From the NCBI RefSeq assembly GCF_001194135.2, contig NC_068983.1, positions 62,456,780-62,499,223 of the forward strand: DNA of 42,444 nt, written 5' to 3'. The notes beneath the pieces are model-generated. The model worked only from the letters and a program-made list of their open reading frames with translations. It was not told the DNA's origin and did no database searches. Below are positions 4,819 through 42,444 of the stretch, piece by piece; the stretch's first letter is position 1; each line of letters opens with the position of its first letter. This stretch comes from Octopus bimaculoides (taxonomy: Eukaryota). Both the position numbers and the translations under genes were made by a program.

Positions 4819-5344
4819 NNNNNNNNNNNNNNNNNNNNNNNNNNNNNNNNNNNNNNNNNNNNNNNNNNNNNNNNNNNNNNNNNNNNNNNNNNNNNNNNNN
4901 NNNNNNNNNNNNNNNNNNNNNNNNNNNNNNNNNNNNNNNNNNNNNNNNNNNNNNNNNNNNNNNNNNNNNNNNNNNNNNNNNNNNNNNNNNNNNNNNNNNN
5001 NNNNNNNNNNNNNNNNNNNNNNNNNNNNNNNNNNNNNNNNNNNNNNNNNNNNNNNNNNNNNNNNNNNNNNNNNNNNNNNNNNNNNNNNNNNNNNNNNNNN
5101 NNNNNNNNNNNNNNNNNNNNNNNNNNNNNNNNNNNNNNNNNNNNNNNNNNNNNNNNNNNNNNNNNNNNNNNNNNNNNNNNNNNNNNNNNNNNNNNNNNNN
5201 NNNNNNNNNNNNNNNNNNNNNNNNNNNNNNNNNNNNNNNNNNNNNNNNNNNNNNNNNNNNNNNNNNNNNNNNNNNNNNNNNNNNNNNNNNNNNNNNNNNN
5301 NNNNNNNNNNNNNNNNNNNNNNNNNNNNNNNNNNNNNNNNNNNN
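4819..5344. other. Assembly gap (N run) flanked by (TA)n
   Basis: N run. Other gaps are at 9841-9984 and 33512-33642. Confidence 1.
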
Positions 5345-7052: not shown

Positions 7053-8949
7053 TTAGGAAGTGTCGTAGAGGACCATTTACGGCGTCCTTTTTATTTCCAA
7101 AACTGGAGAATGTTTGAGAAAAGTATTAGATACGGCATCATATTGAAAAACTTATACGCAGTTGTAACTCCCCAGGGACAGATTGATTTTCAGTATATCA
7201 TGGAACGGAAATAATGAAGAAGGCTCCTTATTACAGCAACCCACGAGTGAGTTATGGTTTTCTTCTAATTTTTCTTTAGGTTTCCATGTTATAATAAAAA
7301 TTCATAAAGAGCTTATCAAAACTTGGAATATACACAATCGAAACTAAACGCTTTACCGTTATTCCAATTTTACAGTCGTTTGGAATGAAGATAAAAAAAA
7401 AAACTGATTGCTTACTTTAACACACGGTCATATAGCACAAGAAGAAAAAATAAACTTAAAATATTGCTGCTGATGTTAGAATTTTAAAATGTTCCTTTAT
7501 ACCTTTTTTATTTTTACATAAAAGTTTACACATTTAAAATTTGATATTACATATTTATACATTTAAAAAGTCACAAATAGCAAAATAAGCAAAATTGACA
7601 ATGTATTGTAACCTTAAGTTTTTTTTTTTAAGAACAAACTAAAGAGTCATTTCTACATTTTGCACTCAATTTGTTCATTAGCTTAAGTTTTTAAAATATT
7701 CTTCTAAATCTCAGTAGAAAATACTTTTTTTTATCTGAAAATGGAAACTTAAAAAGAAAATATTCCTTTCGTTTCTTAAAATATCTTTTTTTACTACTTT
7801 TTACTCTTTTGAATAACATATATTGTACATAAGTCTAATCTTATAACACAATATCTGTGATTTAAAATTTTTGCATAATGAGTTTTGTTAAGAAAATGAA
7901 ATTAAAAATACATAATACCAAAATTAAGACAGAGATGTTTAAGCTTAAAACAAAGAGATTTTAAAATGAAAACATTAACTTAAAGTGGTTTGCAAGAATT
8001 ACAGAAATATATTTAGTAAATTCTAACTTAAGCTGCAATATTTAAGTTTTTTTTTTTAATTGTTTTCCAAGTTCAGTACATAAAAATATTCTAGCACTCT
8101 CTACCCGTATTTTTCATTCTGTTACTGCTTGTTGTGTCACTTTTCCAGATTCAATATTTAAGAATATTCTAGGATTCTGCGTCCGCATTTTTCATTCTAG
8201 TCCCTTTTTTTCCAGGCATCGACTCTATTATTATAATTAATTATATCTACTTCTATAAGTTACAGAAATGATACTATGCTAAATATTTTTAAAATAAGGA
8301 ATTTGCTCACATCTAAATTTTGCTGACACCTAAAAAAAATAATGTTTCTACAGACCCTCCTACAAAATGTAAATGATTCATCTTATTCTGGTTGCATGAC
8401 TGCAGCTCTTCTTATGCATAGCCAACGTCACCATGCCCAATCTGATGATATCGAATAGCAAAAAGTGTTAGATTGTTACAAGTCCTTCCTCTCTTAGCAT
8501 CATGTTGTACCACATTGTGCAGCTGGTTCGCAAACAGGTGGTAGAATATAGCCTCAGCCATTATAACGATATTTTAGCCATACATATATACCACATCATA
8601 ATGGATCACACCATAGACAAAGTTTTCATTGCAGTGATCAATTCTTTCAATAGATACATCAATAAATATTAATAAAATATGGTTATGCCAAACTACAACT
8701 TTTAATATCATTAAGGTAATGTACTGTCTTGCTAACTTAGCGTAGAAAGAAACTATATTGAAGACAATGACAAAGAGCCTACACCAATAGTTGACTGATT
8801 AACGCATATCTTAGGAATACAACGAGCTTTGTAATCATTGAACTGTTAAACTGCTACACATAGTGTGTTTTCTTCCTTGAGTATATAACATTTGATCTAT
8901 ATCTTGAGCTATGTATTTTAATTTCGTATTTCCTTCCAAAATATTTACT

Positions 8950-9110
8950 GTTTTACTTGTTTCAGTTATTTGACTGCGGCCATGCTGGAGAACTGCCTTT
9001 AGTCGAGCAAATCGACCCCAGGACTTATTCTTTGTAAGCCTAGTGCTTATTCTATCGGTCTTTTTGCCGACCGCTAAGTTATCGGTTGTCAAGCGATGCT
9101 GGGGGGAGAA

Positions 9111-9191
<81 letters not shown>

Positions 9192-9358
9192 TACGACAGG
9201 TTTCTTTCAGTTTCCGTCTACCAAATCCACTCACAAGGATTTTCTCGGCCTGAGGCTATAGTAGAATACACTTGCCCAAGGTGCCACGCAGTGGGACTGA
9301 ACCCGGAACCATGTGGTTGGTAAGCAAGCTACTTACCACACAGCCACTCCTGCGCCTA
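8950..9358 (-). mobile_element. Near full-length tRNA-derived SINE family B with an internal (CA)n(TA)n tract
   Basis: Minus strand reads GGCGCAGGAGTGGCTGTGTGGTAAG..GGGTTCAGTCCC..CCTTGGGCAAGTG, then an internal microsatellite, then the body. A plus-strand homolog lies at 38954-39240. Confidence 0.85.
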
Positions 9359-9639
9359 TAAGTTAATTACAATTCAAAAACCAGCTTATTACATGAAGTT
9401 ATTTCTTTTTCCAGTAGAGTTACAAGGGTATCTTACAAGGTCAAATATTTGAAATGCATATATTAAGTGCTTCATTAAACATGGATGGATGGAATCTGTA
9501 TTGATCCCACCATGATTTGAAGTCAGAAATTTAAAATAATGTAATTAAATACGAAGCATATTACAGATACTCTATTTACTCCTAACAACAACGTTTCTAT
9601 TCATTATCAATACCCTCTGGCAGATTCAAAAGTTGTGCT

Positions 9640-9840: not shown

Positions 9841-10051
9841 NNNNNNNNNNNNNNNNNNNNNNNNNNNNNNNNNNNNNNNNNNNNNNNNNNNNNNNNNNNN
9901 NNNNNNNNNNNNNNNNNNNNNNNNNNNNNNNNNNNNNNNNNNNNNNNNNNNNNNNNNNNNNNNNNNNNNNNNNNNNNNNNNNNNATATATATATATATAT
10001 ATAAAAGGGTAGCAAAGCTATACAAAGTTATACTACCAGTGGCCTAGCATG

Positions 10052-10913
10052 TATTAAAAAAATATGAAGTTGATAATCATAATAGTTGTGGTGATGGTAA
10101 CAACTACAACAACCAATATTACTACCTCTCTCTCTAACTTTTTGCTACCCTTTTATATATGTACTCAAGTATTTGATATTAAAATTTCAAAGTTCGTTTC
10201 GGCATTTTTCCTTTTCTGCCGACTGAAATTGCGTCTGCGCAGTGGATTTAGAAAAAATAAGAATGTATATATAGAAAACATGTGCTTTTGGCCTTCTGTC
10301 TTGTAACTATACGTTAATTCCTTGTCGGCTGGTTACTGAAGAGAATTCACCTAGTAAATCATTTTATTTACTAAAAATTTCGAAACCTATAGGTCTAACC
10401 GTTAAAAATAAGGTAAAAGTTTTTATTTTTTCTTCCCTTTGAAATGTTTTACTTTGTGGTTTTCTTCTAGCATGTAGAAGTTACCTGTTATGGGTAATTT
10501 CTCTTATACTTTATATTGAATATGTCTAAATATGCATATTATTGCATTAAGTCATACCATATTTACTCTTTCTAGTAGGCAATACTTTATACGCATTTTT
10601 ACCTACTTTTATTTGAAGAACGGTTAATTACCTAAGTAGAAATTTCGTAATGTTTTGACCGTAAGATTTGTGTTAGGCTAAATGAATAACTCGGAATAAA
10701 AGACTGTCGAACAAGAATAAGAGAGTAACTAATATTACGAGAGAAACCATATTAGTGTTGCGGCGGCGATGTGGAGGATGATTATGTTAAGCTGAGAAAG
10801 AGAACGGAAAGGGAGAGGCAGTAAAAGTTAGAGAGAGAGGTGGTAATATTGGTTGTTGTAGTTGTTACCATCACCACAACTATTATGATTATCAACTTGA
10901 TATTTTTTTAATA
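10052..10913. mobile_element. Non-autonomous TIR element with ~91-bp terminal inverted repeats
   Basis: 10052-10142 is the reverse complement of 10823-10913 with 2 mismatches. The ~680-bp interior is non-coding and AT-rich. Confidence 0.75.
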
Positions 10914-13132: not shown

Positions 13133-13205
<73 letters not shown>

Positions 13206-14660: not shown

Positions 14661-14749
14661 AGGTTGTTCATTTACAAAGTCATGTGATAGAGACAAATGA
14701 GAAGAAAGTCCGAGAGAAAAAGGAAAAAAATAGAAAAAAAAAAATGAAA

Positions 14750-15256
14750 ATGCAGTCGATTCTTTCTGCGGCTGTATTCAGTTATGGCTTTATTGATCAT
14801 TAATTGATCTTTACAGTCGTATGAGCCCTTGCAGCATCCCTTCTGCTCTTCAGGAAACAGGTTGTTTTCTTCCAGGTGTTTACTCAATCTCTGCGATATT
14901 ATTGCAGTAAAGGCTTTGTAGATTGTAAGGAGACAGGTTATAGGTCTGTAGTTTTGTGGTTTTGCCGTTTCCGTGGATTTGGGAATTAGGATAGTTTTCC
15001 CTTTCGTGAGCCATTCAGGCATTGTCTCTGGCTCTGCTAGTATGTTGTTAAAGTTTTGAGCCAGCTTTTTGTGCATTCCTGTCAGATATTCTAACCAGAA
15101 ATTGGGGATCTTGTCGTTCCCAGGTGCCTTCCAGTTACTTAGTATTTGCGGTGCCTGGCTGACCTCTTCAGTTGTTATAGGGGTCCAGAGTTGCTCAGGT
15201 GCTAAGTTCGTTGTTTTTATGGTCCTTTTCTGAGGTTGTTCCGGCGATTGATCCAT
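14750..15256 (-). mobile_element. R4/Dong-clade LINE, RT N-terminal fragment
   Basis: Open frame with NWKAPGNDKIPNFW, PEWLTKGKTILIPK, NYRPITCL, EQKGC and DQLMINKAI. Homology ends after RRKNRL. Confidence 0.9.
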
Positions 15257-21899: not shown

Positions 21900-24765
21900 A
21901 TTTTTAACGACATCCGACAATCATGGATTTTCCCGACTCTGCTTTTAATACATCAGAACAAACAACATCACAGAACCGAATAATTTGATCAAGGCAGCAA
22001 GTATTCTTGTAGCAGAAAATGTGGTTGTTGATGTCAAGAAAAAGAAACATAATGAGAGTGACAAAAGATAAGATCCACGTTGGAAAATAAAAATCCAGGC
22101 AGGGTTAGACATGCTCCCGAAGGAAATCTCTGTGTTAGACCGAAAAGAGAAAGAGGAGCTTAAAAGCGGACAAAAATACAGGGCGCTGAAAAGGAAGTAT
22201 GATATTGGAAGAAAAGGCCTGGAAGTAGTAGTGGAGGAAAGCGCTTCGTTGCAAAGAAAGCAAAGATGGTAAGATACGACCAAAGAATGAAGGGTTACCA
22301 CCAGAATAGGTTATTAAGAGTAGATCAGAAGAGATTCTATAAAGAAATAAGTGGAGAGTGTTCAGATGAAAAGTTGATACCAGATAATATTGAAAGTCAA
22401 GAGTTTTAGAGTGACATCTGGAGCAAAGACAAGGAGCAAAAGAGGCTGAATGGTTGCAAGAACTGAAACAAACAATAGTCTGTCCAAAACAGGCAAAACT
22501 AGTCATTTCAGTTAGGGAAGTGAAGGAAATCGGCAAAAGAATGAGCAACTGGAAGGCCCAGGGACCAGGTGGAGTTCAAGGCTACTGGATCAAAAGATTT
22601 GGTGAATGTCATGCACTAATAGCTGCGCAACTCAACACCTTGTTAAATGCCGACCAAGGAACATCAGAGTGGTTGACATTGGGTAGGATAGTGTTGTGCT
22701 TGAAAAGCATCGAAAAAGGAAATACAGTAGACAATTACAGGTCGATATCCTATTTGCCACTTATGTGGAAGTTATTGACTGAAATACTCGCAGAGTCAAT
22801 GTACGAACATCATAAAAAAAATGGAGTCCTGCCACATGAGCAGAAGGGTTGCAAGAGTAAGTGCAGAAGTACCAAGAATCAACTCCTGATAGTCAAAACT
22901 GTACTTAGAGACTGCAAGAGGAGGAAAAGTAACTTAGCCATGTCATGGATAGACTATCGTAAGGCGTATGATATGATCCCACATTATTGGATTATGGAGT
23001 TCATGAATCTGGTATTGCATTGAATGTTGAGCGATTGCTTGGAAAAAGTATGGCGAATTGGAGGACGGACCTTACAGCATACGGAAGAAGGTTAGAGACA
23101 ATAGAAATTAGAATGGGCATCTTCCAAGGGGACTGCCTGGTCTCACTGATCTTTGTACTGTGCTTGACACCACTGACACTGATTCTGAGAAAAGCAAAAG
23201 CTTGGTATGTTTTCAAAAACCGCCAGCAAAAAGTCAACCATTTGTTATTCATGGATGACCTCAAACTGTATGGTAAAGATGAAACCCAAGTCAGTTCCCT
23301 CGTTGATACGGTGTATACCTTCAGTGCTGATATCAGAATAAAGTTCGGAGTGAGAAAGTGTGGTGTGTTAGTCTTGAAGAGAGGCAAAATCAAATGTTTG
23401 GACGGGCTAACGATACCGTCGGGGAAGGTTATGAAGCAGAAGCAGATTGAAGAGACGGGCTATAAGTACTTGGGGTTTGGGAAATGGATAAATTGATGGA
23501 GAAAGAAATGACAGGAAAAATTAAGGTGGAGTACTTCCGCAGACTGAGACTGATCGTTAAGTCGAAATTAAACGGACGGAATAAGATCGAAACGGACGGA
23601 ATAAGATCAACACCTGGGTAGTTTCACTCCTTAGATATTGAGCAGGGGTAATTGCATGGACACTAGACGAACTAAGCATCTTAGGCAGAAAGACAAGGAA
23701 GTTGCTAACTAGATATGGGTCACACCACCCCAAAAGTGACAGAGACAGACTGTGTGTACCAGGAAAAGGAGGGGCAAGAGTACTTATTGGTTGCGAACAA
23801 AGCACTAGAGCAGAAGAAAACAACATAGCATGGTATGTAAAAAATGCCACAGAACCGCTTATATTAGAAGTAAGAAGGTCAATCTTGTGTAGGATGAAAG
23901 ATTGCAAAGATAAAGCTCTATACAAGAAATTGAAAATGAATGAAACTGGAAATAGGTGGGTAAAGAAAAGAATGCATGGTCAATTTCATAGGGATGTTGA
24001 AGATAAGACAGAGAAAAAAGATGGCTGTGGATGACTAAAAGTGTTTTAAAACCGGAAACGGAGGCTCTGATTTGTGCTGACCAAGAGCAAGCACTAAGAA
24101 CAATCTACATAAAATACAGAATAGGTATCACAGTAGAAAGTGATAAGCGCAGAATCTGTTGATAAAACGGTGAAAGCGTATGGTATATTACCAGCCAATG
24201 TACGCCACCAGCTCAGAAGGAATATAAGAGACGTCACGACAATAGAGCCAATCTTGTCTATTGGACACTCTGCAACAAGTATGGACTTGACAGAGGAAAG
24301 AACTGGTACGATCACAACCTGAAGGCATCATCGAAAATAGAAATGCAAAGATCCAATGGGATTTTATGATTCAGTGCGACCATGAGATAGAGAATAGGAA
24401 GCCAGACATAGTCTTAAATGAGAAAGAAAACAAACTATGATGGATCATAGACATAGCATGCCCAGCTGACAACAAGTTATGTGATCAGGAAGAAAGAAAA
24501 GTTGAGAGATATGACAGGTTAGCTTGGGATGTTAAGCAGTTGTGGTCGATGAAAAAGGTAGCATTAGTACCAATAATTGTCAGAGCCCTGGAACAGTGAG
24601 TAAAAATCTCGAGAAGTACGTGGAACAAATAGGGGCTGCAATAAGGGTGGAGCACTTGCAGAAAACAGCACTGCTTGGAACCGCTCAAAGGTGTTACCTT
24701 AGTTCACTGGTACTGAACAGCTGACACTGTAGTACATCTCCAGCGTTAGAATCTGTGCAAAGGCA
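21900..24765 (+). mobile_element. Long, frameshifted R4/Dong-clade LINE (RT plus RLE), second family
   Basis: NWKAQGPGGVQGYW, NYRSISYL, EQKGC, WIDYRKAYD, GIFQGD, HLLFMDD (23248-59), YKYLG, MHGQF, RRHD, RKPDIV (PD 24402-07), IIDIACP and LQKTALLGTA. Short UTR, then (ATG)n(AAT)n. Confidence 0.93.
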
Positions 24766-33466: not shown

Positions 33467-33912
33467 GTTTAAAAGAGTTCCAACACTGTCTGTTTTTTAT
33501 GTTTTATTTATNNNNNNNNNNNNNNNNNNNNNNNNNNNNNNNNNNNNNNNNNNNNNNNNNNNNNNNNNNNNNNNNNNNNNNNNNNNNNNNNNNNNNNNNN
33601 NNNNNNNNNNNNNNNNNNNNNNNNNNNNNNNNNNNNNNNNNNATATAAATATATAAAGGCCTTTATATATTTATATATTTAATCCTTTATATTGAACACT
33701 CAATATTTCATCTATACAATAAGACATATTCCATATATTCAATATGACATTCAATACTTTATTTCATAGTACCATCCATTTTTATTTTATATTATATATT
33801 GTATATTATATTATATATTGTATATTCCATATTCTATATCCCACATTAGTTTTGCAGGAATATAAATAAAACATAAAAAAATAGACAGTGTTGGAACTCT
33901 TTTAAACAAAAT
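33462..33912. mobile_element. Putative MITE with ~50-bp TIRs, spanning an assembly gap
   Basis: 33462-33511 (TTTTGTTTAAAAGAGTTCCAACACTGTCT..) is inverted at 33862-33912 with one mismatch and one indel. TA-rich flanks. Confidence 0.6.
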
Positions 33913-35080: not shown

Positions 35081-35161
<81 letters not shown>

Positions 35162-35740: not shown

Positions 35741-36239
35741 TTTATATATCCGAAAAAGAAGTACAATCTAAATCATTAGATCGGTAGTACATTTTTAGAA
35801 GGTTGATTGTTATGGCCGGTCAGGAAGTGACCACTGGTTTCGCACCTATAAAGCGCTTAGCTATGTAGGTGACCCGTCAAACTCAAATGACTGGAGGCTC
35901 CCTTGAGGAGAAGAGAGGTTATGTACCTCGTGCCATTTGTGTCTGGCGAGTCACCTATAAAGCTAAGCCATTTATAGGTGCGAAATCAATGGCCACTCTC
36001 TGAGAGAGAGAGAGGGGGCAGGGAAGAATCAGAATTAATCAAATTAAGTTGGTTAATTGGGTGAAACAATAATCAAAATTTACTTTATGTTCGTATTTAG
36101 GCGTGACTGCTGTTTTTCAATGAATGTAGTATACTTATTTATAAGCTCTTGTTCAGATGCTGTCCCAATATGTTGATATAAAGGAAATAATTTGGAGTTT
36201 GGTTGGAGATTTCCCGTGCATTCATCTAAGTGTTCGCTT
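35741..36239 (+). repeat. Left arm of a ~500-bp inverted repeat
   Basis: Continuously alignable to the reverse complement of 37888-38396, with scattered mismatches and small indels. Confidence 0.92.
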
Positions 36240-37887
36240 AATGAAATTTGTCTATATCTTGGGAAGAGATATTGTTCTGTATGCCTTTTTTAAAAATGGA
36301 ATCCCGAACTTTCCAGTAGGTAAGGAAACTCCCACTGTTTGGTAAGAACCAAGAGTAAAAAATTTGGGCGACCGGACTATGGGAGTGTCCAAAGCAAATG
36401 GAAGCTTCGGAATTCCATTTTAAATTATACACACGCACCCCCACCCCCATATATATTAAGAAGGAGGCAGTCAGAATTATGGATAGTTCCTTATCAGCGC
36501 TTTCGTCCATCAATAGGACATACATACATATATACATATATATATACACACACACACAAACAAACATGTTTAAATACATATATAAATATACATATACATG
36601 TGTATACATACTTACGCACATACATGTATGCATGCATGCATACATACACATACATGTGTGTGTGTTTGTGTGTGTGTATGTGTGTGTGTGTGCATGCCTG
36701 TGTACAATCACATACAATTGAATAAACATGTGTGCGTTTGTGTGTGTGTGTGTGTGTGTGTTTGTGTGTGAGTATGGGTGTGTCAGTGTGTGTGCGCGTG
36801 TTCATGCGTATATGTAAAGAAGAGAGACAGTCAGGGACTGGCAAAAACGGAATGAGAAATGAAATTTAATGAAAAATGAATATTTTAGTGAAAAATATAT
36901 GACCGCTAACCATTTTACATAGAGGAGGAAAAAATAAACAATATTTTCAGAATACTAGAACATTAATATAGACACATGGAAATCGATGTTAAATTGAAGA
37001 AGCTACTTGCATTGAAATCCCCAAGGATCAAGAATTCTTTATTGCAAAACACTAATGAGCATATACGAAATGAGGAAAAAGTGAAAGAAGCGGGGTGCTG
37101 CTTAATATTTCATGTAGGTGTGTCGGTTTTATAATAAGTGCTTGTAGAATTTGTAAGCCGTGAGTTTCAACACAATTGGGAAGACACTCACGGCCTTTCA
37201 CAAAGACATGATGTTCAGCTATTTCTTTAGAAAATTTTCTTCAATATGTTGAGATTTCTGGCAAAAGATACCCAGAAAATGATGAGTTTATTTGTGAAGT
37301 ACTTGACGTAATTTCTTCACTCCAACAAAACCAATCAAAACGTAATTAATGTCCAATATTTTACAATTTTTCATCCTCAATAACTAATCGACAACGTTTT
37401 GAAAATTAGGAAGAAGAAAATTCTAGGTGTTGATTCATACATAAATACATGCATACACATACATACACACACATACATACTCACATATATATGTATACAG
37501 AGAGAGAAAGAGAGAGAGAAAGAAAGAAAGTAGTAATAAGATTACATACTCCACAGTTATAACGAAAATATTTCTTTTATGCAAAGCAATTAACGAGGCA
37601 GCTCAACATAAGTGAAAGGTATCAGCTTTAGAGCAATTGTATTATACAACATAAAGAGTCAAAACGAAGTGGCACTTGAAAATAGAATCACGCTGCACAT
37701 TGAAATGAATTTGTAAAACACGTAAAATTTTCTCCGACATACTGGCACATACACACGTACACAGTTGTATATATACAAAATAATATATACTCTCGCAAAA
37801 AACGCAAGCATACCCTTGAATATACACACAAGAACACACATTGCTGCATTATTAATACTGCTTTATTTCGGAGGAGTCATACTAAGA

Positions 37888-38396
37888 AAGCATACACATA
37901 GATACATGCACGGGAAATCTTCAACCAAATTCCAAATTATTTCCTTTATATCAGCATAGTGGAATAGCATCTGAACAAGAGCTTATAAATAAGGAAGCCA
38001 CATTCATTGAAAAACAGCAGTCACGCCTAAATACGAACATAAAGCAAATTTTGATTATTGCTTCACCCAATTAACCAGCTCATTTTAATTAATTCTAATT
38101 CTCCCCCTCCCCCTCTTTCTCTCTCTCTCCCTCTCAGAGAGTGACCATTGGTTTCGTATCTACAAAGTGCTTAGCTTTATAAGCGACTCGTCAGATACAA
38201 ATGGTCCGAGGCACATAATCTCTCTTCTACTGAAGGGAGCCTCCAGTCATTTGAGTCTGACGAGTCACTTACATAGCTAAGCGCTTTATAGGTGCGAAAC
38301 TACTGGTCACTCCCTGACCAGCCATACGACTCAATCTTGTAAAAATGTATTACCGATCTAATGTTTTAGAGTGTACTTCTTTTTCGGATATATAAA
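37888..38396 (-). repeat. Right arm of a ~500-bp inverted repeat
   Basis: For example AGCATCTGAACAAGAGCTTATAAATAAG (37967) mirrors CTTATTTATAAGCTCTTGTTCAGATGCT in the left arm, and CGGATATATAAA mirrors TTTATATATCCG. Confidence 0.92.
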
Positions 38397-38399
38397 CTA

Positions 38400-38435
38400 T
38401 TTATTTGATATTTTTACTATATTTTTCGTTTTATT
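38400..38435 (-). promoter_or_regulatory. Two candidate AATAAA polyadenylation signals of the Ly6/uPAR gene
   Basis: TTTATT on the plus strand at 38430-35 and 38400-05, about 100-135 nt past the stop codon. AATAAA is frequent by chance in AT-rich DNA. Confidence 0.4.
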
Positions 38436-38536
38436 TACATACGAATACATATAAACGTGTGTGTGTGTGTGTGTGTTTCATACCATCTCAACCGGCAACA
38501 AACAACATAATACTCTACTGCTACATTCACTTTGTT

Positions 38537-38772
38537 TCATCCAACAATGACATCAGTAGCAAATAAAGACACAATAAGAAGCTGTAAGACAGCAAACGAT
38601 GACTGTACGAACTCCTGCCCGCTGATATTACAGCCATCTTCGTGACAGCAACTGGTGCAAATCCATTTGTTTTGGGTTTTATCACAGGGAATATCTTTAT
38701 TCTCCTGTTTCTGGATGTGACAAGAAGCATTCACAGAACATGTTTTTATGATGGACAGCTTCTCACTGACGT
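38537..38772 (-). CDS. Last coding exon of a Ly6/uPAR (LU, three-finger) domain GPI-anchored protein
   Basis: Long T-rich acceptor ..TTTATTTTTGCAG| at 38773, phase 1. Encodes (D)VSEKLSIIKTCSVNASCHIQKQENKDIPCDKTQNKWICTSCCHEDGCN (CCxxxxCN hallmark), then ISGQEFVQSSFAVLQLLIVSLFATDVIVG* (GPI-signal-like). Confidence 0.9.
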
Positions 38773-38953
38773 CTGCAAAAATAAATAAATAAAAAAGAGT
38801 AAAAAGACAAAGAAATACAATGAAAGTACAAGAAAAATTTAATACAAATACAACATCAACTTTTCAAGACCCTTGGGCTCCAATGACTTTCAGGGTTACT
38901 CATTTCTCCAAACTAGAGGTGATCGCCTAAACAAAACAAATACTAAATTTATA

Positions 38954-39240
38954 CAGGCATGGCTGTGTGGTAAAGAGTTTACTTCCCAATCATATGGTTT
39001 CAGGTTCAGTTACATTGCATGGCGTGACAGCTTGGATACTGCTTCTACTTAAGCCCTATGTCGACCAAAGACTGAGTAAATTTGGTAAGTGGAAACTGAA
39101 AGAAGCCCATTGTATATGTAAGAGAGAGAAAGTGTGAGTCTTTGTCTGCCCACTACCGCCTGCTTGACAACCAACGTTTTATTTACGTCCTCGTAATTTA
39201 GTGATTCGGCAAAAAGACACCTATAGGATAAGTACCAGTA
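38954..39240 (+). mobile_element. Diverged SINE family B copy (intronic)
   Basis: CAGGCATGGCTGTGTGG..AGGTTCAGT..GGAAACTGAAAGAAGCCC..GCTTGACAACC..GGCAAAAAGA. Homologous to 8950-9358. Confidence 0.8.
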
Positions 39241-39886
39241 TTTGGAAGCTCGTCATGCAATAAAGTTTTGTGTGAAGCTAGGTGAAAACTCCACAGAAGC
39301 TTCTGAAATACTCCTGACTTTTTCACTGGCACAAGCAACTCAAAGACAGTAGAAAGGAAGTGAGAGATGATGAGAGGTGTGAGAGGGAGAAGGACACCAG
39401 AACATCGGACTGGTTGAGAAAATTAACAGTTATCTGGATGAAAACTATAGTGTGTCTATATAGACAATAAGCATACAGTTTGGAGTTACTGTGATATAAA
39501 ATTATTCATAAAGATCTGTATGCGCAAAATTTATGCAAAGTTTGTACCTAGGGTGTTCATTGATGAGGATCCTAGTAACCAACAACTTGACAGAGAGGGG
39601 AGTGGAAACCATCCGTCACCCTCCTACAACTCTATGAGACTTCTGGCTGTTTCATAAGCTGAAGGAGAACCTCAAGGGTAGTGGTTTTGGAGAGGAAGGT
39701 GGCTATAACAAGAGTTCGGAACTCTGTCAATTTGGAAGACTTCTATGGGGACTCGACGAAGTGGTTGGAGTGAGCGCTACAAGTGCATTGACAGAAGATC
39801 TTATGTTAAAGGAGATTAGAGGTTTTATACTTCTTAAAATTTATGTCTCTCCTGAAAAGTCTGAAAACTTCAGAAATACAACTTGT
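39241..39886 (+). mobile_element. Internally deleted mariner transposon (intronic)
   Basis: LEARHAIKFCVKLG, WHKQLKDSR..DDERC, AKFVPRV (WVPREL equivalent), ETIRHPP and DFWLFHKLKENLKG. The catalytic core between these is deleted. TIR-like AAAGTCTGAAAACTT..CTTGT at the end. Confidence 0.85.
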
Positions 39887-39999
39887 TCAAAAATTCAAGT
39901 CTTATACATTGGTAAATACGATAATTTTAAAAAATAAAACAGTACCCAAAAGTAGATAAGAAGTAATTGCCATCAGTTCTGAGGGGACATGGGACGTAC

Positions 40000-40128
40000 C
40001 TGAATAAGCTACAATGGTTTGGCATGTGTCCAACGCTGGTCCACATTCGTGCAGGTTTAAATCGCTCATGCAAAAGTTGTTGGTCAACTCATTGTCACAT
40101 TCATAGCATTTGAGGCTGGAAACACAAT
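40000..40128 (-). CDS. Internal coding exon of the Ly6/uPAR-domain gene (N-terminal half of the LU domain)
   Basis: Acceptor TTTCTTTATTGTTCCAG| and donor AG|GTACGT; 129 nt, phase 1-1. Encodes CVSSLKCYECDNELTNNFCMSDLNLHECGPALDTCQTIVAYS and splices in frame to 38772. Confidence 0.9.
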
Positions 40129-40249
40129 CTGGAACAATAAAGAAACAAAATTAATGATTTAGCAATAACTGAATTCCACTGGCCACCCCAAGCGCCACTA
40201 CTGTGTTTCAAAGAATGCCTCGTAAACATTAAGTCTTTCATCTCCCCTG

Positions 40250-41211
40250 TGTTCACTGGTAACTATACCTTGAAGACCAGTTTATACATTTCAGCCAAAG
40301 AGAGCACAGCAGCAACAGTGGAATTATTTTCAGAATTCATCAATGAACTTTTCCTCTTTCAGCTTGTACTTATGCCAACAAGATTCAACAGAACCACGTT
40401 GGACTTAATGTTTAGTAACCACATCCTTTCTGACCACGGTATGATTATCTGTAGTTCGAGATTCCAGCAACCAAAAGCGACACAGTACGATCTCGCTCCA
40501 GCACACTCTTTTGGCCTCATGGATCTACACAATGCTAACTGGAAGGCAATCACCTATGATCTTCTACTTGTTGACTAGTTTTTCACTCACTCACTCACTC
40601 TCTCTCTTCCTCCTCCCTCACTCCAAGCAGCATCAATACTGGCTGCTATTTGTGGACATTGTTACAAATAAATGTTCACACCACACTCCATTACGGTCCA
40701 TGAGCAAAACTAAACATGGGCACCTGCATAACAGAAAAGTACTTAGGGAAATAAAAACCAAAAAAATTAACCAGCTATAACATTGCCCACTGCAACGCGC
40801 TCACTTGACAGATATTGCTTCACTGGAATCAAAGAAACATTATCATCAAAATTGCATGAAGATTATCATTGTTATTCAAAGAACACAAGAAGAAAAGTTA
40901 TTTTCTGAATGAAATCACTAGATGCTGGTTATATTTGCAAAATTTCCTATCCCAATTGATTGTTTCACTTACCTCTCATATCATCACATTATTCAAGAGA
41001 ATGGTGAGATTTCAAGTAACTCACTTCCTGGAAAATAACAATCTACTTATTCCCAACCAGTATAGTTTCCACAGTGGCAGGGACAACTCCTGCATCAATG
41101 ACACCCTAAAGTCTCCAGGTGAGGGTTCAAATGTAAATGTCACATATCTGGAGTTCAGCTTGGGCCCTGACAAGGTAGATTACGTCCTGTTAAAGAAACT
41201 ATCAAACATTT
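40250..41211 (+). mobile_element. Decayed CR1-like LINE remnant (endonuclease end and RT start)
   Basis: FQLVLMPTR..TLDLMFSN..SDH, NANWKAI, SLTSHIITLFKRMV, FLENNNLLIPNQYSF and VTYLEF..DKVD..LLKKL. Large internal deletions. Confidence 0.75.
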
Positions 41212-42444
41212 GTGTTGCAAGACAGTGTGTGAGAGAGAATCGTGATGTTGTAGGAGAGAAATGTGTCCGCATAGATGATGGTACACTTGCACGAAACAAG
41301 GCTGCAAAGAGAGAGGTTTGGAGACGCTACTATGAAAGGTTGCTCAATAAATAGAATGAATGGGAGAAAGAGTCTGCCGAATGTCGACCCAACAGAGGGA
41401 CCAGCTATCCGAGTTGACAGTACCATGGTAGATAAAGTAATTAAGAGTATGAAGACAGGGAAAGCCCCCGGCCCATCAGGAACCACTGCAGACATGCTCA
41501 AAATATCTGGCAGCGTTGGCTATAGCCTAGTCACCTGTATAGTTAACCAGGTGATACACGGAGTCATACCCAATGACAGGTGTAGCAGCACCATAGTCAA
41601 CTGCTACAAAGGTAAAGGTGACGCTTTAGATACAAATAATTACAGAGGCATCAAGTCGCTGGATCAGGTAATGAAAGTCATGGAGAGGGTCATAGCTCAA
41701 CTGATTAGGGTGAGAGTCAGTTTAGATGAGATGCAGTTTGGGTTCGTGCCAGGGAAAAGCACCACTAATGCTATATTTCTGGTAAGACAGCTGCAGGAGA
41801 AATACCTAGCCAAAGATAAACCTCTGTACCTGGCTTTCGTTGACATGGAGAAAGCCTTTGACAGGGTCCCCCGATCCCTTATCTGGTGGTCAATGAGGAA
41901 ACTAGGGATAGAAGAATGTTTAGTGAGAGCTGTGTTAGCCATGTACAGAGACGCTGTCAGTAAGGTAAGGGTTGGCAATGAGTACAGTGAAGAATTCAGG
42001 GTAGAGGTAGGGGTCCACCAAGGTTCCGTCCTCAGCCTCCACCTATTTATCATAGTCCTTCAAGCAATAACACAGGAATTCAAGACAGGATGCCCCTGGG
42101 AGCTTCTTTATGCTGATGACTTTGCGCTAATTGCTGAGTCACTATCAGAACTAGAGGAGAAGTTTCAGGTGTGGAAGCAAGGTCTAGAATTGAAGGGCCT
42201 TAGAGTCAACCTAGCTAAAACCAAAATCCTAATAAGTAGGAAGGTAGATAAAACACAAACCCCTTCAGGTAGATGGCCCTGCTCAGTATGTAGAAAAGGA
42301 GTAGGTAGTAACTCTATAAGATGTACCCGGTGCAAGCTATGGACACATAAGAGGTGCAGCAACATCAAAGGCAGGTTAACTAGCAAGTTAGTTTTTGTTT
42401 GTGGCAGATGTTCAGGTGCAATAAAGACTGCAAACAAACAGGAA
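41212..42444 (+). mobile_element. RTE-clade LINE, 5'-truncated, RT with PHD finger; runs off the window
   Basis: After an early stop and 2-nt frameshift, 41371-42444 is open for 358 codons: GKAPGPSG, NYRGIK, QFGF, FVDMEKAFD, GVHQGSVLS, LLYADD (42109-20), then the C4HC3 motif CSVC..CTRCKLWTHKRC..CGRC (42280-42411). Confidence 0.95.

Follow-up and report, generated by a model that had tools for sequence, protein, structure and literature searches.

An unnamed three-exon octopus gene codes for a Ly6/uPAR three-finger protein of LYPD1/LYPD6 type with a strongly conserved central finger

Do two short open reading frames (ORFs) in a repeat-rich octopus locus belong to one gene, and if so, what sort of protein does that gene encode? 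The locus lies within a 42,444-nucleotide stretch of Octopus bimaculoides DNA (assembly GCF_001194135.2, contig NC_068983.1, positions 62,456,780 to 62,499,223), which we call the window and in whose coordinates features are given below. Here, the mechanical ORF list contains only fragments on the minus strand, at 39902-40087 (61 aa) and 38537-38734 (65 aa). An initial annotation, made from the sequence alone, proposed that these two fragments are consecutive exons of a single gene for a 12-cysteine three-finger protein of the Ly6/uPAR (LU) class, and this proposal proved right at the level of both the gene and the protein; none of the three outcomes that it had named as refuting came up. Window positions 38537-40128 on the minus strand hold exons 2 and 3 of LOC106878993, a three-exon gene with a 142-aa precursor. 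The product is a single-domain LU three-finger protein, with a domain of about 88 residues and 12 cysteines. Gene identity and protein class, taken together, can be held with good confidence; the further step, that the protein modulates a receptor, is far less certain.

Splicing positions 40128-40000 to 38772-38537 yields a single frame of 120 aa, CVSSLKCYECDNELTNNFCMSDLNLHECGPALDTCQTIVAYSDVSEKLSIIKTCSVNASCHIQKQENKDIPCDKTQNKWICTSCCHEDGCNISGQEFVQSSFAVLQLLIVSLFATDVIVG, closed by a stop codon; it starts with CVSSLKCYEC and ends with CTSCCHEDGCNISGQEFVQSSFAVLQLLIVSLFATDVIVG. Coding exon 2 (40000..40128, minus strand, 129 nt) is bounded by AG upstream and GT downstream, and because it consists of 2 + 126 + 1 nt (42 full codons between the two partial ones), the introns on both sides are in phase 1. 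The last residues of the signal peptide (D-CVSS) are encoded here, followed by loop I and the first of the two strands of loop II (LKCYEC...TCQTIVAYS). Intron 2 (38773..39999, minus strand, 1227 nt, GT...AG, phase 1) falls within the LU domain, precisely where the central finger, loop II, has its tip (YS/DV, where the slash marks the junction). Coding exon 3 (38537..38772, minus strand, 236 nt with its TGA stop codon, 38539-38537) completes loop II with the second strand and goes on through loop III and the CTSCC..CN core to a candidate glycosylphosphatidylinositol (GPI) attachment region, N-I-S-G, and a hydrophobic C-terminal propeptide. The first acceptor reads ...ttattgttccAG/ATTGTG at 40129/40128 (AG at 40130-40129), the donor TTCAG/GTacgt at 40000/39999, and the second acceptor ...tttatttttgcAG/ACGTCA at 38773/38772 (AG at 38774-38773), with long T-rich polypyrimidine tracts before both acceptors. 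On re-splicing, the GT-AG sites, coordinates, phase and quoted sequence of the initial annotation were all found to be correct.

That annotation also expected a signal-peptide exon, ending in phase 1, beyond the window. This exon was located 12,055 nt past the window end on the same chromosome, at positions 10001-10064 of the extracted locus of the RefSeq protein XP_014783861.1 (L002; GCA_001194135.2 chromosome CM046603.1). It reads ATG ATA ... GCT CCA G/gttcgt, coding for MITSGCQQTLISGLILLFLAP plus one base (G) before a GT donor in phase 1. The window and this locus are 100% identical across overlaps of 8.8 and 5.0 kb. Within the window itself, a low-stringency tblastn search with the O. sinensis N-terminus as query gave only noise for a signal-peptide exon. 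Intron 1 measures 14,370 nt in total, and its 3'-most 2.3 kb (40129..42444, minus strand) carry repeat and ORF debris. At the other end of the gene, the start of the 3' untranslated region (38430..38536, minus strand) contains a (CA)9 microsatellite at 38458-38475, which is followed by the first AATAAA. The latter lies at 38435-38430, 101 nt past the stop, and a second follows at 38405-38400; both are putative poly(A) signals, judged by the motif. A typical Ly6 gene has three exons, with the signal peptide in the first and the other two sharing the LU domain ahead of the GPI signal (PMC4839075). The octopus gene matches that plan, with the signal peptide in exon 1, the LU halves in exons 2 and 3 and a GPI-type tail in exon 3.

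Is this a new gene? The 120-aa product is identical to residues 23-142 of XP_014783861.1 (LOC106878993, "uncharacterized protein", 142 aa), and the proposed junction is exactly the RefSeq junction. Calling the gene hidden was thus mistaken, as a RefSeq model already existed and was just unnamed. The model carries neither a name nor a precomputed Pfam domain, the latter because the single-sequence Pfam scores all fall under cut-off, and the searchable literature makes no mention of the locus. When the 120 aa were searched against a large protein collection, the matches were O. sinensis XP_029649167.1 (95% identity, 100% coverage), a protein of Argonauta hians and two unnamed relatives; XP_014783861.1 and O. 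vulgaris CAI9738429.1 share one 90% cluster with the O. sinensis match.

The ORFs are each short when taken alone (61-65 aa) and are surrounded by abundant retroelement debris and microsatellites, so one might suspect a pseudogene, or chance ORFs amid repeat-rich intergenic DNA. The conservation data refute this suspicion, which we consider next to impossible. The frame is intact over three exons with canonical splice sites, and O. sinensis has three corresponding exons with identical splice-site contexts. The coding sequence is 94.9% identical to that of O. sinensis at the nucleotide level, as against 77-88% for intron 2 where it can be aligned (the intron measures 1227 nt in O. bimaculoides and 2032 nt in O. 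sinensis). The dN/dS ratio between the two species is 0.20, and the gene is under purifying selection. Moreover, there are orthologues in O. vulgaris and Argonauta, and relatives in other phyla at 47-60% identity. A 1238-nt intron-less contig assembled from run SRR23936179 (L003) codes for a relative with 71% identity, in a frame that runs unbroken through the exon 2/3 junction and on into a 3' untranslated region; it is apparently a spliced mRNA of that relative.

Two gene models among these relatives deserve a remark of their own. In the contig just described (Logan contig SRR23936179_37819), the called ORF of 190 aa at 235-807 begins at an upstream ATG in a Lys/Arg-rich leader, and the true start is likely the internal Met of MPSPLYASYFVLTFILWPANLCA, which would give a normal signal peptide. 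The Argonauta hians model 'LOC115222915' (P0002) has an N-terminus, METAGDDGLPRVIKLRGEV..., that lacks the hydrophobic signal of the Octopus orthologues, and its first exon is probably wrong.

What places the product in the LU class? A Pfam search with the single sequence returned four full-length matches, all in the three-finger (LU) clan, with Toxin_TOLIP at the top, followed by UPAR_LY6_2, UPAR_LY6 and CD59. The best single-sequence match in the PDB is human LYPD1 (E 0.04), with all 12 cysteines aligned. A profile of 11 close relatives matched LYPD6B best (8.4e-8) and also CD59 (2.4e-5), and PF16975 is matched by all 11 of these relatives at E < 0.01. An exhaustive hidden Markov model (HMM) search of 1.84 billion representatives then gave 337 relatives at E <= 1e-3. 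A 99-sequence profile (A3) matches LYPD1 at 1.9e-13, LYPD6B at 2.2e-11, LYPD6 at 6.4e-11 and CD59 at 9e-11 in the PDB, as well as uPAR domain III (about 1e-10 or better), PSCA, SLURP1, GPIHBP1 and Lynx1. Among the 99 sequences, 28-30 pass E < 1e-3 on PF16975, PF00087 or PF00021 (best 2.3e-18), and 16 match the CD59 model of Pfam. Both exon segments contribute, with family HMM matches of 3.4e-24 for exon 2 and 6.5e-33 for exon 3. The three-finger class claimed at the outset is therefore borne out by profile matches of 2e-13 to 1e-10, together with a structural model that fits Lynx2/LYPD1 best.

The cysteines tell a more specific story. The domain that follows LKC has 12 of them, a 13th lying in the end of the signal peptide, and their spacing (2,8,8,6,18,5,11,8,2,0,4) can be set beside that of LYPD1 (2,8,8,7,16,5,10,8,2,0,4), LYPD6/6B (2,8,8,6,18,5,4,10,2,0,4) and Lystar5 (2,8,10,6,17,5,12,8,2,0,4), the last a starfish LU protein. 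The octopus protein is LYPD6-like in its N-terminal half and LYPD1-like in loop III. Eight core cysteines, which would make up the four invariant 'head' disulfides, and the CCHEDGCN segment (a CC-x4-CN motif) align column by column with LYPD1, LYPD6B, LYPD6 and CD59. The additional cysteine pairs of loops I and III align with C6-C15 and C66-C75 of Lynx2, that is, with the fifth and sixth disulfides. Indeed, Lynx2, LYPD6 and LYPD6B share extra disulfides in loops I and III (PMC7582953). By homology to Lynx2, the likely disulfides in precursor numbering are C29-C57, C32-C41, C50-C76, C82-C106, C94-C103 and C107-C112. Judged by its 12-cysteine pattern, the product belongs to the six-disulfide LYPD1(Lynx2)/LYPD6/Lystar5 arrangement, and the LYPD1/LYPD6 resemblance noted initially is confirmed by a one-to-one alignment with LYPD1 and LYPD6.

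Structure prediction agrees with this placement. The AlphaFold 2 (AF2) model built with the 99-sequence alignment reached a mean predicted local distance difference test score (pLDDT) of 89.3, with the LU part above 90, and a predicted template-modelling score (pTM) of 0.74. When this model was compared with the PDB by Foldseek, the top match was Lynx2/LYPD1 (6zss; E 2e-5, target-normalised TM 0.80, root-mean-square deviation 2.4 Å), followed by LYPD6B, LYPD6, PSCA, uPAR, Lynx1 and snake three-finger toxins. Nearly all of the top 50 PDB matches are three-finger toxins or LU domains, and ectodomains of BMP/activin-type receptors make up the remainder. The predicted fold is thus a three-finger β-structure. 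In the model, residues 57-66, where loop III begins, form a helix, and Lynx2 has a long α2 helix of this kind (PMC7582953).

What of the two ends of the precursor? Hydropathy analysis finds an N-terminal hydrophobic region at residues 9-21, and cleavage of the signal peptide likely occurs at VSS/LKC, which would leave the usual mature start L-x-C-Y-x-C. A second hydrophobic stretch covers residues 123-142, where the protein ends with no cytoplasmic tail. The CN motif leads into ISG-QEFVQSS, and 19 mostly hydrophobic residues complete the protein, giving a tail of 29 residues in all. A hydrophobic tail ends all of the relatives, even though the tail sequence itself is conserved at just 12-18%. 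From this layout, a heuristic basis, the tail is very probably a GPI-attachment signal with attachment near N113-I-S-G; Lystar5, which has a like layout, is predicted to be GPI-anchored by PredGPI (PMC9410279). There are two N-glycosylation sequons, of which N79-A-S is invariant across the subfamily. The mature protein would accordingly be a small glycosylated three-finger domain tethered at the outer leaflet of the plasma membrane.

The relatives of the octopus protein reveal a further feature, an unusually constant central finger. Identity to the octopus protein is 95% for O. sinensis (over all 120 aa) and 84% for Argonauta hians (over 85% of them), and it is still 57-60% over about three quarters of the 120 aa in Solemya, Ostrea and Lineus; in the profile search, the Argopecten relative scored E 7e-34 and that of Tubulanus 1e-42. 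The close relatives outside the cephalopods are from bivalves (Solemya, Ostrea, Argopecten) and nemerteans (Lineus, Tubulanus), so that the lophotrochozoan group comprises O. sinensis XP_029649167.1, O. vulgaris CAI9738429.1, Argonauta hians, Solemya velum, Ostrea edulis, Argopecten irradians, Lineus longissimus and Tubulanus polymorphus. More distant relatives occur in tardigrades, amphioxus, hemichordates and echinoderms, and an additional homologue search with the 99-sequence alignment returned 12 proteins, little beyond echinoderm ones named 'uncharacterized'. The lophotrochozoan group shares the near-invariant finger DTCQTIV.YS..SEKLSI.K.C, an invariant N-x-S sequon and the hydrophobic C-terminus. 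Between the octopus protein and its bivalve and nemertean relatives, loop II (DTCQTIVAYSDVSEKLSIIKTC; residues 35-54 of the 120-aa fragment) is 80-90% identical, while the figure for loops I and III is just 39-47%. The loops of LU domains are generally considered variable, so conservation of this degree is unusual, and it points to an ancient, fixed binding partner.

The database names of this group are of little help. The relatives are filed as uncharacterized, LYPD6B-like, LYPD2-like, PSCA-like, U-scoloptoxin(05)-like, SLURP1-like, CD59B-like or LYPD1, so the group is uncurated and contradictorily named. No literature background was found for the name 'U-scoloptoxin(05)'.

Which partner might the central finger bind? 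The leading candidate, put forward tentatively and by analogy, is a Cys-loop (nicotinic-type) receptor, because Lynx2, LYPD6/6B and Lystar5 act on nicotinic receptors and because loop II is the classical receptor-binding finger. Such a role of loop II is described for α-neurotoxins and Lynx1 (PMC7821949), and both Lynx2 and LYPD6 act on nicotinic acetylcholine receptors (nAChRs) (PMC7582953, PMC8494132). In the possible mechanism, the octopus protein would bind a receptor of its own membrane, acting in cis, with the central finger on the receptor's extracellular domain, and binding would damp or tune channel gating, as with Lynx2, LYPD6 and Lystar5. A bolder extension can be imagined, in which loop II would be the sign of an ancient auxiliary subunit, dedicated to a conserved lophotrochozoan Cys-loop receptor and also recruited in octopus to tune the nAChR-derived chemotactile receptors (CRs) of the suckers. 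This extension, again by analogy, is a long shot, and a search for literature linking octopus CRs with Ly6 proteins found none.

Several observations pull against this chain of assignments, from LU protein to receptor modulator. All four single-sequence Pfam matches lie under their gathering cut-offs, with 19.6 versus 21.2 bits for Toxin_TOLIP, 18.9 versus 31.5 for UPAR_LY6_2 (PF16975), 16.7 versus 24.8 for UPAR_LY6 and 15.7 versus 33.9 for CD59, although these cut-offs are operational criteria rather than biological ones. Because of these low scores, the LU assignment depends on profile and structure. The initial annotation had recommended a check against the UPAR_LY6 and QVR families, and its outcome was mixed: UPAR_LY6 was matched, below its cut-off as just given, but QVR (PF17064, the insect Quiver/Sleepless family) was not matched by the octopus protein even at E up to 10, and only 6 of the 99 sequences, all distant relatives, match it at E < 1e-3; membership in the LU family is supported by the profiles of the relatives. 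The first AF2 model, built from the 11-sequence alignment, was poor (pLDDT 57.5), and the 99-sequence alignment was needed for a usable fold. Among 160-odd sequences, LYPD1, LYPD6, LYPD6B and Lystar5 each match other invertebrate sequences better than they match the octopus clade. Reciprocal best hits were thus not obtained, and because one-to-one orthology is not supported, the protein is best filed on present comparisons as LYPD1/LYPD6-like, not as an orthologue of either. Finally, the functions of LU proteins are diverse, including complement control, Wnt co-receptor function, septate junctions and lipase transport, and because they are so many and unrelated, family membership predicts function weakly. 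Even the invertebrate precedent has its limits, in that Lystar5 was assayed on rat or human receptors and not on native partners (PMC9410279).

Given this diversity, could the protein do something other than modulate a nicotinic-type receptor? Non-neuronal housekeeping is one answer, either in the assembly of epithelial septate junctions and the paracellular barrier or in CD59-like protection of the cell surface. The Drosophila Ly6 proteins Boudin, Coiled and Crooked act in septate junction and barrier assembly. The gene has no tandem copy within 10 kb on either side in two octopus species, its relatives are spread over many non-cephalopod phyla under heterogeneous names (CD59B-like, LYPD2-like, PSCA-like), and CD59 is matched both by the profile (9e-11) and, through the Pfam model, by 16 of the 99 relatives, all of which would suit such a role. 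However, CD59 has 10 cysteines in a different spacing and is outranked by LYPD1 and LYPD6, and the insect QVR-type match is missing from the octopus protein, occurring in just those 6 of the 99 distant relatives. On balance, we regard a housekeeping role as unlikely. Another answer follows LYPD6, which binds LRP6 and raises Wnt signalling (PMC8494132, PMC8473786): a raft-resident GPI protein would bind the Wnt co-receptor LRP5/6 and promote its phosphorylation, in development and not in neurotransmission. The cysteine spacing of the N-terminal half is exactly that of LYPD6 (2,8,8,6,18), PF16975, the LYPD6 model, is matched by all 11 close relatives, and both the sequence and the structure searches place LYPD6B and LYPD6 near the top. 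On the other side, the loop III spacing is LYPD1/Lystar5-like (11,8) and not LYPD6-like (4,10), and human LYPD6 and LYPD6B match the invertebrate sequence P0151 best, well ahead of the octopus clade. In addition, LYPD6 reportedly uses an N-x-I motif for LRP6 (Zhao et al. 2018), and the LYPD6 chain has 'GNSIS' at the tip of loop II, but the octopus domain has no N-x-I tripeptide. A Wnt-directed function is thus quite improbable as the main role, and it would not in any case exclude action on nAChRs, as LYPD6 itself acts on them.

The proposal that can be set aside most readily for the protein is that of a secreted three-finger toxin, a venom component of the salivary gland. It draws on Toxin_TOLIP as the top single-sequence Pfam match, on the NCBI name of an oyster relative ('U-scoloptoxin(05)-Cw1a-like') and on the presence of snake three-finger toxins among the fold matches, but these last are far weaker than the matches to Lynx2 or LYPD6. 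Secreted toxins lack the hydrophobic GPI-type tail that the octopus protein retains. There is no tandem copy within 10 kb either side in the two octopus species, the dN/dS of 0.20 indicates purifying selection, and the protein is conserved in non-venomous bivalves, nemerteans and tardigrades. We therefore reject the toxin as very improbable on these grounds. The search behind the statement on tandem copies covered the window and 10 kb on either side of the gene in O. bimaculoides and O. sinensis, and it found neither tandem copies nor further LU exons, so that the gene stands outside any tandem array within that span.

Returning to the nicotinic-type receptor as tentative partner, what is gained? 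LU proteins form a very large and well-known family across Bilateria, so the gain is one of annotation rather than concept. What is new is a family assignment for a gene model that had no name, together with an LU subfamily, shared by lophotrochozoans, whose central finger is strikingly conserved. An annotation as a Ly6/uPAR protein of LYPD1/LYPD6 type, predicted to be GPI-anchored, can now be given to LOC106878993 and to the orthologues from O. sinensis, O. vulgaris and Argonauta. Should a nicotinic-type receptor be the partner, the protein could go directly into co-expression experiments with the nAChRs or chemotactile receptors of cephalopods. If tuning of the chemotactile receptors were true, cephalopod taste-by-touch would have its first modulator in the form of an endogenous protein.

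The remainder of the window is repeat-rich. Decayed reverse-transcriptase ORF fragments (Pfam RVT_1, E 8e-6 to 1e-8) lie at 14672-15256 (minus strand) and 22454-23496 (plus strand), the latter split into two overlapping frames, and look like retroelement remnants. An interspersed repeat of about 300-420 bp is present in two copies, at 8941-9359 and, within intron 2 of the LU gene, at 38944-39238. Both copies have about ten counterparts each, at 67-82% identity, in the 29.5-kb O. sinensis locus (L001), and the element is probably SINE-like (a short interspersed nuclear element). In intron 1, ORFs of 109-161 aa (40249-41354, plus strand; 41697-42053, minus strand) have no Pfam match, and the segment 40265-40456 has two counterparts in the O. 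sinensis locus; these too are probably repeat debris. Three assembly gaps, written as N and bordered by (TA)n repeats, occupy 4819-5344, 9841-9984 and 33512-33642, and the long 'ORFs' listed across them are artefacts of the gaps. Microsatellites of (CA)n, (TG)n and (TA)n are abundant, for example at 1364-1459, 13136-13201 and 35102-35157. An Rfam scan of 36000-42444 matched no RNA family.

How, then, does the octopus protein compare with the closest known systems? CD59, with its 10 cysteines in another spacing, falls behind LYPD1 and LYPD6 whether sequences or folds are searched. LYPD6 and LYPD6B (6gbi, 6ib6, 6zso; PF16975, UPAR_LY6_2) are closer. LYPD6B is the top PDB match of the close-subfamily profile (8.4e-8), the cysteine spacing of the N-terminal half is identical, and LYPD6/6B have six disulfides, as predicted for the octopus protein, and are GPI-anchored. 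They differ in the disulfide spacing of loop III (4,10 versus 11,8 in octopus), and the octopus model superposes on them less well (TM 0.58-0.63). LYPD6/6B have one wide β-sheet, as compared to two sheets in Lynx2 (PMC7582953).

Among experimentally characterised proteins, Lystar5 of the starfish Asterias rubens (XP_033628517.1) is the nearest relative, at 36% identity over 97 aa (pairwise E 3e-15; the sequence used is the one given with PMC9410279, apparently short of one residue). Another Asterias sequence among our matches, P0162, was considered as Lystar5 and rejected, since its accession is XP_033629861.1 and not XP_033628517.1. Lystar5 is an invertebrate LU protein, found in coelomocytes, that inhibits the α4β2 nAChR in oocytes; it has six disulfides, and both a signal peptide and a GPI site are predicted for it (PMC9410279). 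It shares 12 cysteines and a three-exon gene with the octopus protein. Unlike the octopus protein, it has loop I longer by two residues, and it has clear echinoderm and hemichordate orthologues of its own, with identities of 59-78% (P0044, P0046 and P0040); these outrank the octopus clade, and so do tardigrade sequences. Perhaps, on the basis of these rankings, the relation between the octopus protein and Lystar5 is paralogous.

Human LYPD1 (Lynx2, 6zss) is the best structural match, even though identity to the octopus AF2 model is just 28% over 88 columns. Loop II has 16 residues between its cysteines in LYPD1 as against 18 in octopus and also differs in sequence, and LYPD1 prefers other invertebrate sequences, leaving no reciprocal best hit. 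On the side of likeness, LYPD1 is the top match of the broad family profile (1.9e-13) with all 12 cysteines aligned, the loop III disulfide spacing is nearly the same (10,8 in LYPD1 and 11,8 in octopus), the predicted octopus helix resembles α2 of Lynx2, and both proteins end in a GPI-type C-terminus.

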